Source of the DNA: Selaginella moellendorffii
Lineage: Eukaryota > Plantae > Lycopodiophyta
Direction of reading: 5' to 3'
Length of the DNA stretch: 64,000 nucleotides
NCBI RefSeq assembly: GCF_000143415.4
Contig: NW_003314297.1
Span: forward strand, 1,642,890-1,706,889
Shown: one piece after another, positions 44,313 through 49,119 of the stretch
Numbering within the stretch: the first letter of the stretch is position 1
How the letters are laid out: every line of letters begins with the position of its first letter
Program-made: the position numbers and the translations under genes
Notes under the pieces: generated by a model
Databases searched by the model: none
The model's input: the letters and a program-made list of their open reading frames with translations, nothing else
What the model was told of the DNA's origin: nothing

Positions 44313-44974
44313 ATGCTTTTAATGTTTTTTTTTATGATTAAAATATGATTCTAAAATAGTTGTATATTCACTATAAGTTGTATAATTCCAATTAACATAT
44401 TCCATATTGTAAATTTCACCGAGTTCAAACTCACATGACTAAAAATTTTAATAAAGAAACTTACCAAAGGTAGTTGTGAGGAAAATGAAAAATAAAATTA
44501 ACTATGAATAGCCATTAAAATTTTAATAAATTTTATTATCTACTCTTAATAATAATTAAGAGTATTTTCGCCCCACAGATGGATTTCCAGATAGGTACAT
44601 TGCCTATCTGGAGGGCAGTAGGCCCCGATCCAGAGAGGAGCTGGCAATAAATAATGGGTTTTAGTTAGAAATCTTTAAGGTTTCGAAAATTAAAAGCTTT
44701 AAACATACTTATCTTTTCACTTTTTTTTTCACCACTATATTCAATTTTCGACACCTCTTTTTCACCATTAGATTCAATCTTTGACACAATATTTAGTGCC
44801 AAACATGCTTAACAATAAATTGAAATAATTGATGTTAACCACCCACAAAATGTCTATAAGATTCTCTTTGTAGAAGCTATTAAATGTATTTTTCATGCCT
44901 TCAATCTATTACAAACGACTAAAAAATGCTGGCAGTCAAGATATAAATTGCAAAAAGAGTCAACAAACACATAA

Positions 44975-45900
44975 TCTCACTTTGACCATTGTTGTTTCCC
45001 CATTTTCCAACATCAGCCAAAATCCACAAGCAAAACCTTAACTTTGAGAACATTACCTTGAGGAATCCACAATAACTGCACCGAGTTCCAGAGTGACTGG
45101 CGTCAGATTCTTTGCGGCCTCAGCCATGACAATTTGGCCGCCTCGTTTATTACCTGAAGGTTTCATCGATAACGTACACTGCCGTGTAGAAAATCTTATC
45201 CCACTTTTGATGGAGAAGAGCAGTGGTTTCCGAAATTCCTCCCTCGACCACGCGAATCGCAGATTTATCCAAGTACAAAGGGAGCAGCCGTGTGATCAAC
45301 GCCGATGTCGCTGGTGCCATCTCGACGGCTTCAACACCACGGCATTGCCCGCGGCAATGGCTCCAACCATCGGGTCCAGGGAAAGGACTGCATTAAAGAA
45401 CCACAAGGAGAGAACCTCGTCACGAAAAAAGAACGAGCGCTAGAACCAACAGACTTACGAAATGGTAAATTCCAGGCGGAGATTATCAGCACGACAGCGA
45501 AAGGCTCGGGCTTCATGGCGGCCGACGCCGGGAGCGTCGAAGCAGAGCTGGAAGCTGGAAAAGAAGATTTCCAAGAAAATGAGCAGAGAGAGCGAGGTTT
45601 TCGATGGCAAGCTGGCACACACTCTTGACGGGAAAGATCTGCGAGGAAAAGATCCACACAGAATCAGCGGGATTTCGATCCAAGAACCAAAAAAGATCCG
45701 GGAGGAAGCAAGCAATCAAAAGAAAAGGTGCCATAGCATCGCCTCTCACCTCACTGGTGAGGCACTCCGAGGGCGATGTCCTCCTCGTGCTTTTGGATCA
45801 AACCCACGATGCTCTTGAGCTGCGCGAGCCGCCAATCCAAGCTCCTCCGAAATCGCTGCGGACCTCGCCACACAGCCGCGATTACGGCGCTCTCCGTCAA
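44975..45900 (-). pseudogene. Truncated aldehyde dehydrogenase family 3 pseudogene
   Basis: RSLDWRLAQLKSI, PEPFAVVLIISAWNLPF, AIAAGNAVVLKPS with a 1-bp frameshift before EMAP, WDKIFYTG, AAKNLTPVTLELG lacking GKCP, and GKW.NNGQ, after which homology is lost. Confidence 0.8.
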
Positions 45901-46431
45901 TTCTTGGCGGCGATCGGACTCCATTGCTCGCTCGCTCGCTCCCAGGAAGAAAACCCTGACAGGCCCTGCTCATTCGAAATCGTCGAAGAAGTCGGCGTGG
46001 TGGAGTAGCGCCACCGCCGGCACACGGTTGCCGCCTGGGCATTGCGCCGCGCCTCGACGAGAATGGAGGAGACGATGCTGTCCGGGATCACGTCGATGCT
46101 GGCGCCGCCTCTCCGCCATAGCTGCGAGCTCCCCCTGACCTGGCGCCAAGAGCACGTGACGTGGAATAAACATTACGGTGGCCCGGGACTTGACCGGTTA
46201 GATTAAACGGGATGGGGATGACGTCCGGAGGGGGTTCTTGATGAGCGCGGGACGTGATGAATAGAGTGGAGGCAGGCTTAAGGGGCTCTGCGCACACGGG
46301 GTGTTCACACTCGATCTAAGGCTTGAAGTTAGATTCTTGGATTGAGGAGTCTACGGTCCATTATTAATCGTTACAATGTAAACGCCACGTGGGAAGATTA
46401 GGGCTAATTAGGCGTGCAATGCTAGGGCAAA

Positions 46432-49119
46432 ATGGCGATCCGACAAAAGTCGAGCGTTCCTCCAGCCGGCATCGTCCGGTAAATCGATCGTGGCCGGTGG
46501 CGGCGGCAAAGATTGCAGCTCGTCCGCGTCTGTGAGCGCGAGATCGAGCACCTCGGAAGTGGCGGGGACCGTGGCAGCGCCCGGGATCGGGATTGGGGTA
46601 AGGGAGTGGAGCAGCGGGTTAAGGGAGCAGCAGGGACGATTTGGCGTGGAAGCTGGCGATGAGAATTTTGCCGTGCCAGCGAGATCTTCCGACAACAAGT
46701 TTGAAGCTGTGCGATGCCATTACTGGGATACTTGCAGGTGAGAAATCACGAGTGAAGAGTTCGATCTTCGATTTCTCGGCAAGAATTTTTTGTTCTCTTT
46801 TCTTCGCCTCGAGTAAGAGCTCTTTTGGTTTTTAGCAGCTGTGGTTTCCATTATTTGGAGCCACGAGAGCCTGGAGCAACGACCAAGGCGTCAAGAACAC
46901 CGAAGATGGACTAGATTTTTTTGGTTTGATGATAGAAAACGATGAAAAAACTTTGTTGCAGTGAGGACGCGGTGACCTCTCTCTCTGCTCAAAGTGGAGT
47001 CTTCCTGCGAATCAAGTCATGGTGGTAAGCATTTTCATCTCATTTCGCTGCTAGAGTTTACAAAATTCACTGTTTCATAGGATCTAATCGCAAAACTCGT
47101 GAATCCTGCCGGAATCTTCCAGTGCCGCGTGACCGACGCCAAAAATGTTGCTGCTGCCGAGGGAAATCTTGAGGAAATCGCAAGATTGTTCCGGAAGAAA
47201 CTCACAGATTTCCAGCAGATATCTCCCGAGCCAGTTCTTCGCCCAGGAAACCATTTCAATGCGCATTACAGCGTGAAGGACATGGACGAGCTCAAATGGC
47301 TGTTCGTGGAATCTCTTACAGGCAGTTAGTTACGGCGTTTTTAGGGTCGTGCCAAATGCCGGGACGGGGCATAATATTCTGATTCCAGGACAGGGGGATG
47401 TGCAGATATGTGGCGAGCGCCATGGAGTCGACTGCAGCGGGAGCAGCAACAACAAGTAGAAAGCTTAAGCGGGAGGCGGCCCAGCGGCGCAAGGCGCAGG
47501 CTAGATCGCTCAAACTTCGGGCCGAGGAACAGGAACGCTTGCAGCGCCTGGTACACTTCTCTTGTGCCTGTTGAGTTCCCGTTTTGTGAGAATAAATGCT
47601 GGTGCTTGTGCTGAGAGCAGGAGATTGATGCACTGGTGGAGCAACAGAGGGTGCAGCGCCTTGAACGACACCGTCGCAAAGAAGACGCTGAGAAGCTCGC
47701 TCGAGAGGCATCAGGGCTGGGTTTGAGCAACAGCTGCTGCTCGCAGGGAGGCGCGCAGCAGACGAGGAGCAGCGATGCGCGGCAGCAGCAACAGCAGAGT
47801 GGAACAGGGGAGAGCAGGTCGTCGTCGTCCTCGTCGAGCTCTGCAGTGCCTTCTTGGCCCGTTGTTTATAAGGACCACCAACAAGCTACAGCACAAGATG
47901 CAGCAGAGCAGCCAGCCACCTCTCAGCAAGTGCAACAGGCGAGAGCTCTTGTGGACAACCGGAGAAAACTGGCGAGGGGCCCTCGCTCGGGAAACGGGAC
48001 TGTGGGCTTGGCATTGACGCAAGTAACCAACTTTGCTGCTTCTAAGAGCTCCGACTTGGCGCTGGAAGATCACCGGGTTGTGAGCACAGAGTACCAAGCA
48101 GCGGGAACGCAAGCTCTGATGCGGGTCACACTTTTAGCAGCGGGTTTTGTCATTGGCGCTCGGGGCATCTCCGCGAGGCTCATCGGTCAGGTGACAGGTG
48201 CCATCATCCAGTCGTGGACGGAATCGTCTGCATGCCGGCACAGCAACAGCGCCACGGGGGTGCCAATGAGACTCTTCAGGATTCAGGGCAAGAAGGCTGT
48301 AGTCCAGGCAGCGGTGGCCCTGGTAGAGCAGGCTGTGGCCAAGTACAGGGAACTGTGCGAGTGCAAGAGAAGGGGTGAATTTGTTCAGCGTGAACATGTC
48401 ATCAACGGGGTTGAGTTTTACTATCAGCCACCACCTCGAAAGGCATTCTCTGACCAACTCGCGTCGTCCAGGACTCCGTCTTCCTCCTCCTCCCCTTCAC
48501 CGGCTTCTGTGGCTGCCGCGGCCACCAGCACCAGCAACTGCAACAGCGGCAGCCGGGCTGACGTCCCCTTTCCCCCGCACCATGCCTGGCTCCGTCACCT
48601 CCAGGCTGCCGGAGCGTCGTCGAGGGATGGAAGGGAGGCACAGCCTGATGGCCATGGCAGAGCGAAGCAAGTCGCCAGCCACGCCAGCCAGCATTCACTT
48701 CAGGTGGAATCCAGCTTGTTTAGTGTCTTTGGCAACGGGGGATTGCCACTGCCACTGTCAATAGCGCAGGAAAGCGCTCCCTCCCTCAAGACCTCCTCCC
48801 TGGACGTGTCCACCACGCCTTTTGACTTTCCAAAGTACGATTTCTTCCGGGAGATTTTGCCTGCGCTGCCGCAGCAGCAGCAGGGGGGAGAGCACAACCT
48901 CTTTGGAGACGAGCTCTGCATGCTGTGTGTTGAGAGGCCGCGTGCGCGTGGTGGCGCTACTCGTCTCACGGTAAGCAAACTCACGCCCCCTCTCGAGTGA
49001 TTTAAATGTGTGTGTTTTGACAGGATTGCGGCCACGCATCGTTTTGTTCGTCGTGCGTCCGGGCACGGGGCCACTGTCCAGTCTGCCATGCAAAGCTTGT
49101 GGGCTGGGGTCTTATGTGA
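46432..49119 (+). CDS. KH-domain plus C-terminal RING-HC protein (MEX3-like architecture)
   Basis: KH motif AAGFVIGARGISARLIGQVTGAII...FRIQG...VQAAVALV. A phase-0 intron at 48971-49023 completes CMLC...DCGHASFCSSC...CPVC. The 5' exons are uncertain. Confidence 0.75.

Follow-up and report, generated by a model that had tools for sequence, protein, structure and literature searches.

Does a lycophyte encode an RNA-binding ubiquitin ligase built like the animal MEX3 proteins? To our knowledge, only a small number of RING ligases bind RNA, and most work on them has been done in animals. The question was raised by a stretch of 64,000 nucleotides of Selaginella moellendorffii (contig NW_003314297.1; hereafter the window, numbered from its first letter), in which a preliminary description had reported a hidden, MEX3-like gene with a KH domain and a C-terminal RING finger. 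We found that the gene is real and already annotated, with three coding exons. At a probability of roughly 0.7, its product is likely an RNA-binding E3 ubiquitin ligase that is analogous to MEX3 and of independent origin, its RING having been joined to a green-lineage KH domain in the land-plant line.

A three-exon gene in the public annotation

The NCBI annotation of scaffold GL377601.1 contains a gene call that coincides with window positions 47398-49119 on the plus strand. This gene, LOC112349159, encodes a 532-residue "uncharacterized protein" in RefSeq (P0001) from three coding exons. The gene and the region upstream of it are laid out as follows.

46432..47397, + strand: upstream stretch without support as coding sequence, within the 1355-bp gap to a divergent minus-strand gene
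47398..47550, + strand: coding exon 1 (residues 1-51; equals P0001 1-51), with the start codon and the beginning of a basic N-terminal helix
47551..47620, + strand: intron 1 (70 nucleotides, GTACAC..GAGCAG), with a gapless flanking match to P0001
47621..48970, + strand: coding exon 2 (residues 52-501), with the remainder of the helix, the RRKLARGPRSG motif, the extended KH domain, a linker, two short motifs and the first C-x2-C of the RING
48971..49023, + strand: intron 2 (53 nucleotides, GTAAGC..TGACAG, phase 0), which interrupts the RING
49024..49119, + strand: coding exon 3 (residues 502-532 and the stop codon TGA), with the C-x-H, C-x2-C and C-x2-C of the RING (to 49086) and then a 10-residue tail

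We compared the exons with P0001 one at a time, and P0001 then stood for the spliced protein in our searches. Residues 1-51, 52-501 and 502-532 are the translations of 47398-47550, 47621-48970 and 49024-49116, respectively, and the open frame 47636-48970 is 100% identical to P0001. The intron within the RING, proposed earlier as a GT-AG intron with an in-frame join, agrees with this public model. Its donor (ACG/GTAAGC) and acceptor (TGACAG/GAT) are canonical, and CMLCVERPRARGGATRLT is joined in phase 0 to DCGHASFCSSCVRARGHCPVCHAKLVGWGLM and the stop. Because the junction is already in the public model, for which PF13920 is also precomputed, the gene is not hidden. Nor does the reading frame end at CMLCVERPR, as had been stated; the exon continues to ARGGATRLT.

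Comparison with relatives gave the same junction. The second half of the RING (49027-49104) is 56 to 58% identical to the Sphagnum and Riccia orthologues (tblastn), and in the lycophyte Diphasiastrum the RING intron has the same position and phase (locus L002, donor 5799, acceptor before 6016; GVRVM/PCGHTCFC). The gene model P0042 breaks at the same point. The deposited Diphasiastrum complanatum model O6H91_Y318200 (P0006, MU833968.1, L002:5799-6234) reads through this intron and ends early, so that the public protein is mis-modelled and lacks a Pfam RING; the true second half of the RING and the tail, ending in YDLWNWTPGASV and a stop, lie at L002 6016-6234.

The start of the gene was a separate matter. 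The preliminary description had placed it at 46432, with exons near 47080-47320 encoding a domain that could not be named. An open reading frame (ORF) of 82 codons and balanced composition does run from 47081 to 47326, and on paper in-frame GT-AG splicing could reach an acceptor at 47388/47389, for example from donors after 47272 or 47305. However, this ORF is closed by its own TAG at 47327, a TGA at 47380 stands in frame with the ATG at 47398, six codons 5' of it, and open frames of about 82 codons are common on both strands of this GC-rich stretch. The NCBI annotation has no coding sequence across 46432-47397. The ORF had no homologue among proteins of 45 to 143 residues and a best score of 0.79 in the Atlas look-up, and comparison of the upstream stretch with the Diphasiastrum locus by tblastx returned only noise. 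Moreover, in the alignment ATG 47398 coincides with the point at which the orthologous proteins of Diphasiastrum, mosses and liverworts start (YV..MES, then KKLKREAAQRRKAQAR). We therefore regard an upstream extension of the gene as very improbable; on present evidence the proposed N-terminal domain lies outside it. The frame at 47081-47329 (plus strand), just 5' of the gene, could be a leader, an upstream ORF or chance.

The KH domain and its green-lineage family

The domain that defines the family lies in exon 2.

48077..48421, + strand: extended type I KH domain (residues 204-318), with an extra N-terminal strand, a beta-alpha-alpha-beta-beta-alpha order, a long third helix and a beta-hairpin ending in YYQPPP
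48155..48166, + strand: GxxG loop, GARG (residues 230-233)

An AlphaFold model of the 150-residue KH core (window 48053-48502, from a 138-sequence alignment) had a mean predicted local distance difference test score (pLDDT) of 84.9, with strands at core residues 20-26, 51-56 and 72-78, helices at 27-34, 36-48 and 81-106 and the GARG loop between the first two helices. The top Foldseek matches were Nova-2 KH3, FUBP1 and PCBP2 (template modelling scores of 0.73 to 0.86, normalised to target), and VIA-align likewise ranked Nova-2 KH3 best (Z, 11.3). All top matches in both comparisons were type I KH domains, and the structures of many had been determined in complex with RNA or single-stranded DNA. 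A search of the PDB with a profile of the 138 family members placed Nova-1 and FUBP first (E, 1e-13; 54 bits), with TDRKH at 35 bits. The type I KH domains of Nova, FUBP/KSRP, PCBP and hnRNP K thus provide both the best profile matches (E, 1e-13 to 1e-5) and the best fold matches (Z, 9 to 11), and they share the GxxG loop. Unlike the Selaginella protein, these proteins have several KH domains and no RING, and the Selaginella KH differs by an added strand (EDHRVV) on its N-terminal side, a third helix of 26 residues and a conserved hairpin at its C-terminal end (RRGEFVQRE..GVEFYYQPPP).

By profile score the domain is divergent. Of the two Pfam profiles proposed for checking the protein, zf-C3HC4_3 scored above its cut-off (27.9 bits against 27) but KH_1 scored below (17 bits against 21.5). 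KH_1 reached 15 to 17 bits in RING-bearing orthologues and 24 to 36 bits in RING-less members from Cryptomeria, Chlorokybus and algae. Since the KH domain falls below the Pfam threshold in exactly those members that bear a RING, public annotation shows only a "RING-type domain", and the architecture can escape domain surveys. The earlier statement that only one KH domain was evident also stands: Pfam found just one KH stretch in P0001 and in every orthologue scanned, and the AlphaFold models show a single KH core, with the remainder helix or disorder. As for the GARG loop, G230, R232 and G233 are invariant among land-plant orthologues in the alignment, GFVIGxxG was present in 166 of 188 retrieved family proteins and the F.Y.PPP motif in 170 of them. 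The KH domain is therefore real, single and extended, though divergent.

We searched 1.84 billion proteins with the 150-residue core (exhaustive phmmer search, HMMER; E <= 1e-3). The core matched 250 representatives, most matches spanning positions 5-135 of 150 and covering the KH domain and its C-terminal extension. The family consensus, ..RVTLLAAGFVIGxxGxS..G..SW....R.F.I.G...YK.LCE..RGEFV.R....GVEF.YQPPP, also describes the Selaginella protein. All named members belong to the Viridiplantae, and many unnamed members come from marine metagenomes. The named members were distributed as follows.

Prasinophytes: Cymbomonas, Pyramimonas
Trebouxiophyceae: Apatococcus, Chlorella, Micractinium, Prototheca
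Chlorophyceae: Edaphochlamys, Raphidocelis, Chlamydomonas eustigma
Chlorokybus
Mosses, liverworts, lycophytes and ferns
Conifer: Cryptomeria

No angiosperm was present among the named hits (a word-based named search plus 20 sampled clusters, rather than a genome-level scan), in line with the earlier remark that no angiosperm equivalent could be recognised. Because the KH core is 60 to 86% identical across land plants, this absence suggests that the gene was lost in angiosperms.

Three further observations concern single members or the core itself. Cryptomeria japonica has at least five RING-less paralogues (P0009, P0010, P0013, P0045 and P0046) with neighbouring tags (SUGI_0627010 to 0627420) on one chromosome-scale contig, which suggests a tandem expansion. 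The Chlorokybus model P0014 (jgi Chlat1 2309) joins the first 44 of the 97 positions of the CFAP298 profile (PF11069) to the extended KH core and is probably a merger of two neighbouring genes. We rejected a link of the family to cilia through this model: only those 44 positions of CFAP298 are present, and members of the family are also known from Chlorella, Prototheca and Cryptomeria. We know of no flagellate cells in these three genera. Finally, in the Atlas the language-model clusters nearest to window 48053-48502 consisted of short KH proteins with the label Nucleocytoviricota (score, 0.86, under the 0.9 level), which is no more than a lead that related KH genes may exist in giant viruses of algae.

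The RING finger, its probable gain and loss, and the comparison with MEX3

The RING begins at the end of exon 2 and is completed by exon 3.

48917..48970, + strand: first part of the RING-HC finger (residues 484-501), CMLC and loop 1

Splicing yields a complete C3HC4 RING, as had been proposed. The eight ligands follow the cross-brace pattern, with the spacing C-x2-C-x15-C-x-H-x3-C-x2-C-x6-C-x2-C, and residues 481-525 of P0001 account for the zf-C3HC4_3 (PF13920) score given above; the last exon alone reached 23 bits. Bryophyte orthologues scored 39 to 44 bits on the same profile.

RING presence across the family was judged by a pattern search over the 188 retrieved proteins and by Pfam scans of selected proteins. 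The pattern was found in eight of these proteins, all from bryophytes or Selaginella, and in Diphasiastrum after correction of its model. It was found in no algal or uncultured member among the 188, and the Cryptomeria copies likewise have no RING. The presence of the KH core without a RING in algal relatives indicates that the KH-RING fusion arose within plants. In the fern models (P0008 of Adiantum and P0012 of Ceratopteris), the motifs flanking the RING are kept and a cysteine-less relic lies between them (alignment columns about 1040-1060; LVQSYPSMPLQQ aligned to CVQGLVNCPLCH, in protein models only). If these gene models are right, the RING has decayed in ferns.

The RING-bearing orthologues come from Physcomitrium (P0004/P0005), Sphagnum (P0002), Ceratodon (P0003), Riccia (P0007/P0044), Calypogeia (P0043) and Diphasiastrum (P0006), and their database names are only "RING-type domain-containing protein" or "hypothetical". 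They share with the Selaginella protein the order of helix, RRRLARGPRSG, extended KH domain, GLPLP and FDFP motifs and RING, with a core that is 77 to 86% identical. Of all these proteins, the one from Selaginella is the shortest: the FDWQ and SLEQALQQVRLEQ motifs of the central region and the WNWxPGASV tail after the RING are missing from it, and its RING loop 1 has four additional residues.

The features that the proteins share outside the two domains are listed below.

47446..47716, + strand: long basic helix (residues 17-83), which spans intron 1
47960..47992, + strand: RRKLARGPRSG motif (residues 165-175)
48713..48757, + strand: SLFSVFGNGGLPLPL motif (SLFSxFGxGGLPLPI; residues 416-430)
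48818..48859, + strand: PFDFPKYDFFREIL motif (residues 451-464)

The full-length AlphaFold model (14 sequences) was poor (pLDDT, 52.3) and uninformative on contact between the KH domain and the RING. Within it, helix 17-83 had a pLDDT of 88 to 98 and probably forms a coiled coil; its sequence, from KKLKREAAQRRKAQAR to EIDALVEQQRLQRLERQ, is conserved in land-plant orthologues. ARGPRSG is nearly invariant across the 14 land-plant sequences, with PSGPR in the family consensus. The linker between the KH domain and the RING, described earlier as rich in Ser and Gln, is about 135 residues long, rich in Ser, Ala and Gln, and disordered in the model. Of the two short motifs, the first has S416, F418, F421 and L426-P429 invariant in bryophytes, lycophytes, ferns and Cryptomeria, and the second, PFDFPKYDFFREIL, is conserved as FDFPxCDFLRESL in bryophytes, Diphasiastrum and ferns.

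How close, then, is this protein to MEX3? According to published descriptions (PMC10850505, PMC8151450), MEX3 proteins are E3 ligases that bind RNA. Animal MEX3/RKHD proteins (MEX3A-D) and the Selaginella protein have in common a KH domain, a disordered region and a C-terminal RING-HC of the zf-C3HC4_3 type, and this layout is the part of the MEX3-like label that stands. A true orthologue would have inherited the KH-RING combination from a common eukaryotic ancestor and lost one KH domain in plants. Besides the shared order of a KH domain before a C-terminal PF13920 RING, the structural alignment of MEX3C KH1 and KH2 to the KH model (Z, 10.0 and 9.8) fits such descent, but these values are equalled by many unrelated KH proteins. 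In the family profile search, MEX3C KH2 reached 25 bits (rank 19), below Nova-1 and FUBP, TDRKH, KSRP, PCBP2, IGF2BP1 and hnRNP K. The closest solved RING by sequence was that of XIAP (E, 0.008), and no MEX3 RING was present among the solved-structure sequence matches at E <= 1. The IAP RINGs (XIAP and cIAP) resemble that of Selaginella also in lying at the extreme C-terminus, with only the 10-residue tail after the RING in Selaginella; the sequence similarity is nevertheless confined to the RING, and the Selaginella protein has no BIR or other IAP domain.

Other differences from MEX3 point the same way. MEX3 has two tandem KH domains and the plant protein a single extended one, neither its KH domain nor its RING is closer to MEX3 than to other KH proteins or IAP RINGs, and outside these domains there is no similarity to MEX3; the Selaginella protein has instead an N-terminal basic helix and land-plant-specific motifs. 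The plant fusion also arose inside a green-lineage KH family in which no retrieved green-algal member carries a RING. Orthology with MEX3 is therefore highly unlikely. The single KH domain, the lack of a special affinity to MEX3 in either domain and the RING-less algal relatives are evidence for convergence through a separate fusion, with the plant protein an analogue of MEX3 and not a member of its family. The preliminary description is thus partly confirmed in what it observed (its junction, RING and KH domain are upheld, but neither the N-terminal exons nor the label of a hidden gene) and partly supported in how it interpreted this: the architecture is right and a ligase that binds RNA is a reasonable suggestion, but the MEX3-like label stands as an analogy only.

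Proposed function and what the family may mean

We infer that the protein is most likely an RNA-binding (or single-stranded DNA-binding) RING E3 ligase, since its GxxG loop is intact, it has the KH fold and its RING is complete. In the mechanism we propose, the KH domain would bind a single-stranded RNA (or DNA) element and the RING would recruit a ubiquitin-conjugating enzyme (E2), so as to ubiquitinate proteins on the same particle or the KH-RING protein itself. The RING would have joined the family in the land-plant line, to be retained by mosses, liverworts and lycophytes and to decay in ferns; the Cryptomeria copies have none.

Several of the results above weigh against this reading or limit it. 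The KH_1 score of the Selaginella protein is below the Pfam cut-off, the absence from angiosperms comes from the named search and the 20 sampled clusters, and the RING is barely above its own cut-off, with the four-residue insertion in loop 1. Together with the missing tail and the missing SLEQALQQVRLEQ motif, the marginal RING suggests that the C-terminal half of the Selaginella protein may be under relaxed constraint. Taken further, the RING could be a decaying remnant as in ferns, which would leave the protein with only the role of a KH-type RNA binder, as in its relatives from algae and conifers. The low score relative to bryophytes, the insertion and the lost motifs are all compatible with such decay, and ferns and Cryptomeria show that the family functions without a RING. 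Yet all eight zinc ligands are present at canonical spacing, the CP-x-C proline is kept, the length of loop 1 falls inside the range of RINGs, the reading frame and splice sites are intact, and the sister lycophyte Diphasiastrum retains a standard RING. We consider a remnant unlikely on this balance.

Decay would remove the ligase; a different role of the KH core would instead remove the RNA. As a protein-interaction or single-stranded DNA-binding module, the core would make the protein an ordinary substrate-specific E3 ligase without RNA guidance. Several of the top structural matches do bind single-stranded DNA (FUBP, hnRNP K KH3 and PCBP2), and a surface for protein binding could be made up of the extra strand and the hairpin. 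However, the GxxG loop keeps its basic residue and is nearly universal in the family, and the closest matches in both sequence and fold are nucleic-acid-bound KH domains, which leaves this a rather improbable account of the protein. An RNA-binding ligase of independent origin is thus the reading that we prefer. A broader history, in which an RNA-guided E3 arose at the origin of land plants by RING fusion and was then dismantled stepwise, through decay in ferns, RING-less copies in conifers and loss in flowering plants, is possible, and we put it forward only tentatively.

Two neighbouring genes lie close to the locus. Downstream, on the same strand, only 73 nucleotides separate the KH-RING stop codon (49117-49119) from the ATG of MO25 (PF08569, from 49192), so that untranslated regions or promoter must overlap the neighbour. 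On the other side, a divergent minus-strand gene (44546-46042, ATG at 46042) encodes a 249-residue product with no Pfam family on record, and the two genes have the 1355-bp intergenic region in common.

The Selaginella locus itself is an ordinary, correctly annotated gene, and the KH-RING family to which it belongs is an unstudied, lineage-restricted variant. We found no description of a plant KH-RING family in the literature searched, whose coverage was incomplete and leaves novelty unproven, or in a catalogue of plant RING proteins (PMC6118397); membership in an already characterised plant family, which the preliminary description had named as grounds for rejecting its proposal, was accordingly not encountered in these sources. 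Such a family would represent a separately evolved RNA-binding RING ligase, built on a KH variant with conserved extensions of its own. If the broader history is true, the MEX3 design has evolved twice, and bryophytes and lycophytes retain a module of post-transcriptional and ubiquitin control that is invisible in flowering-plant models. Its stepwise loss towards flowering plants would then provide a clean case for how such modules are gained and discarded, in a family that is open to testing in Physcomitrium and Marchantia.

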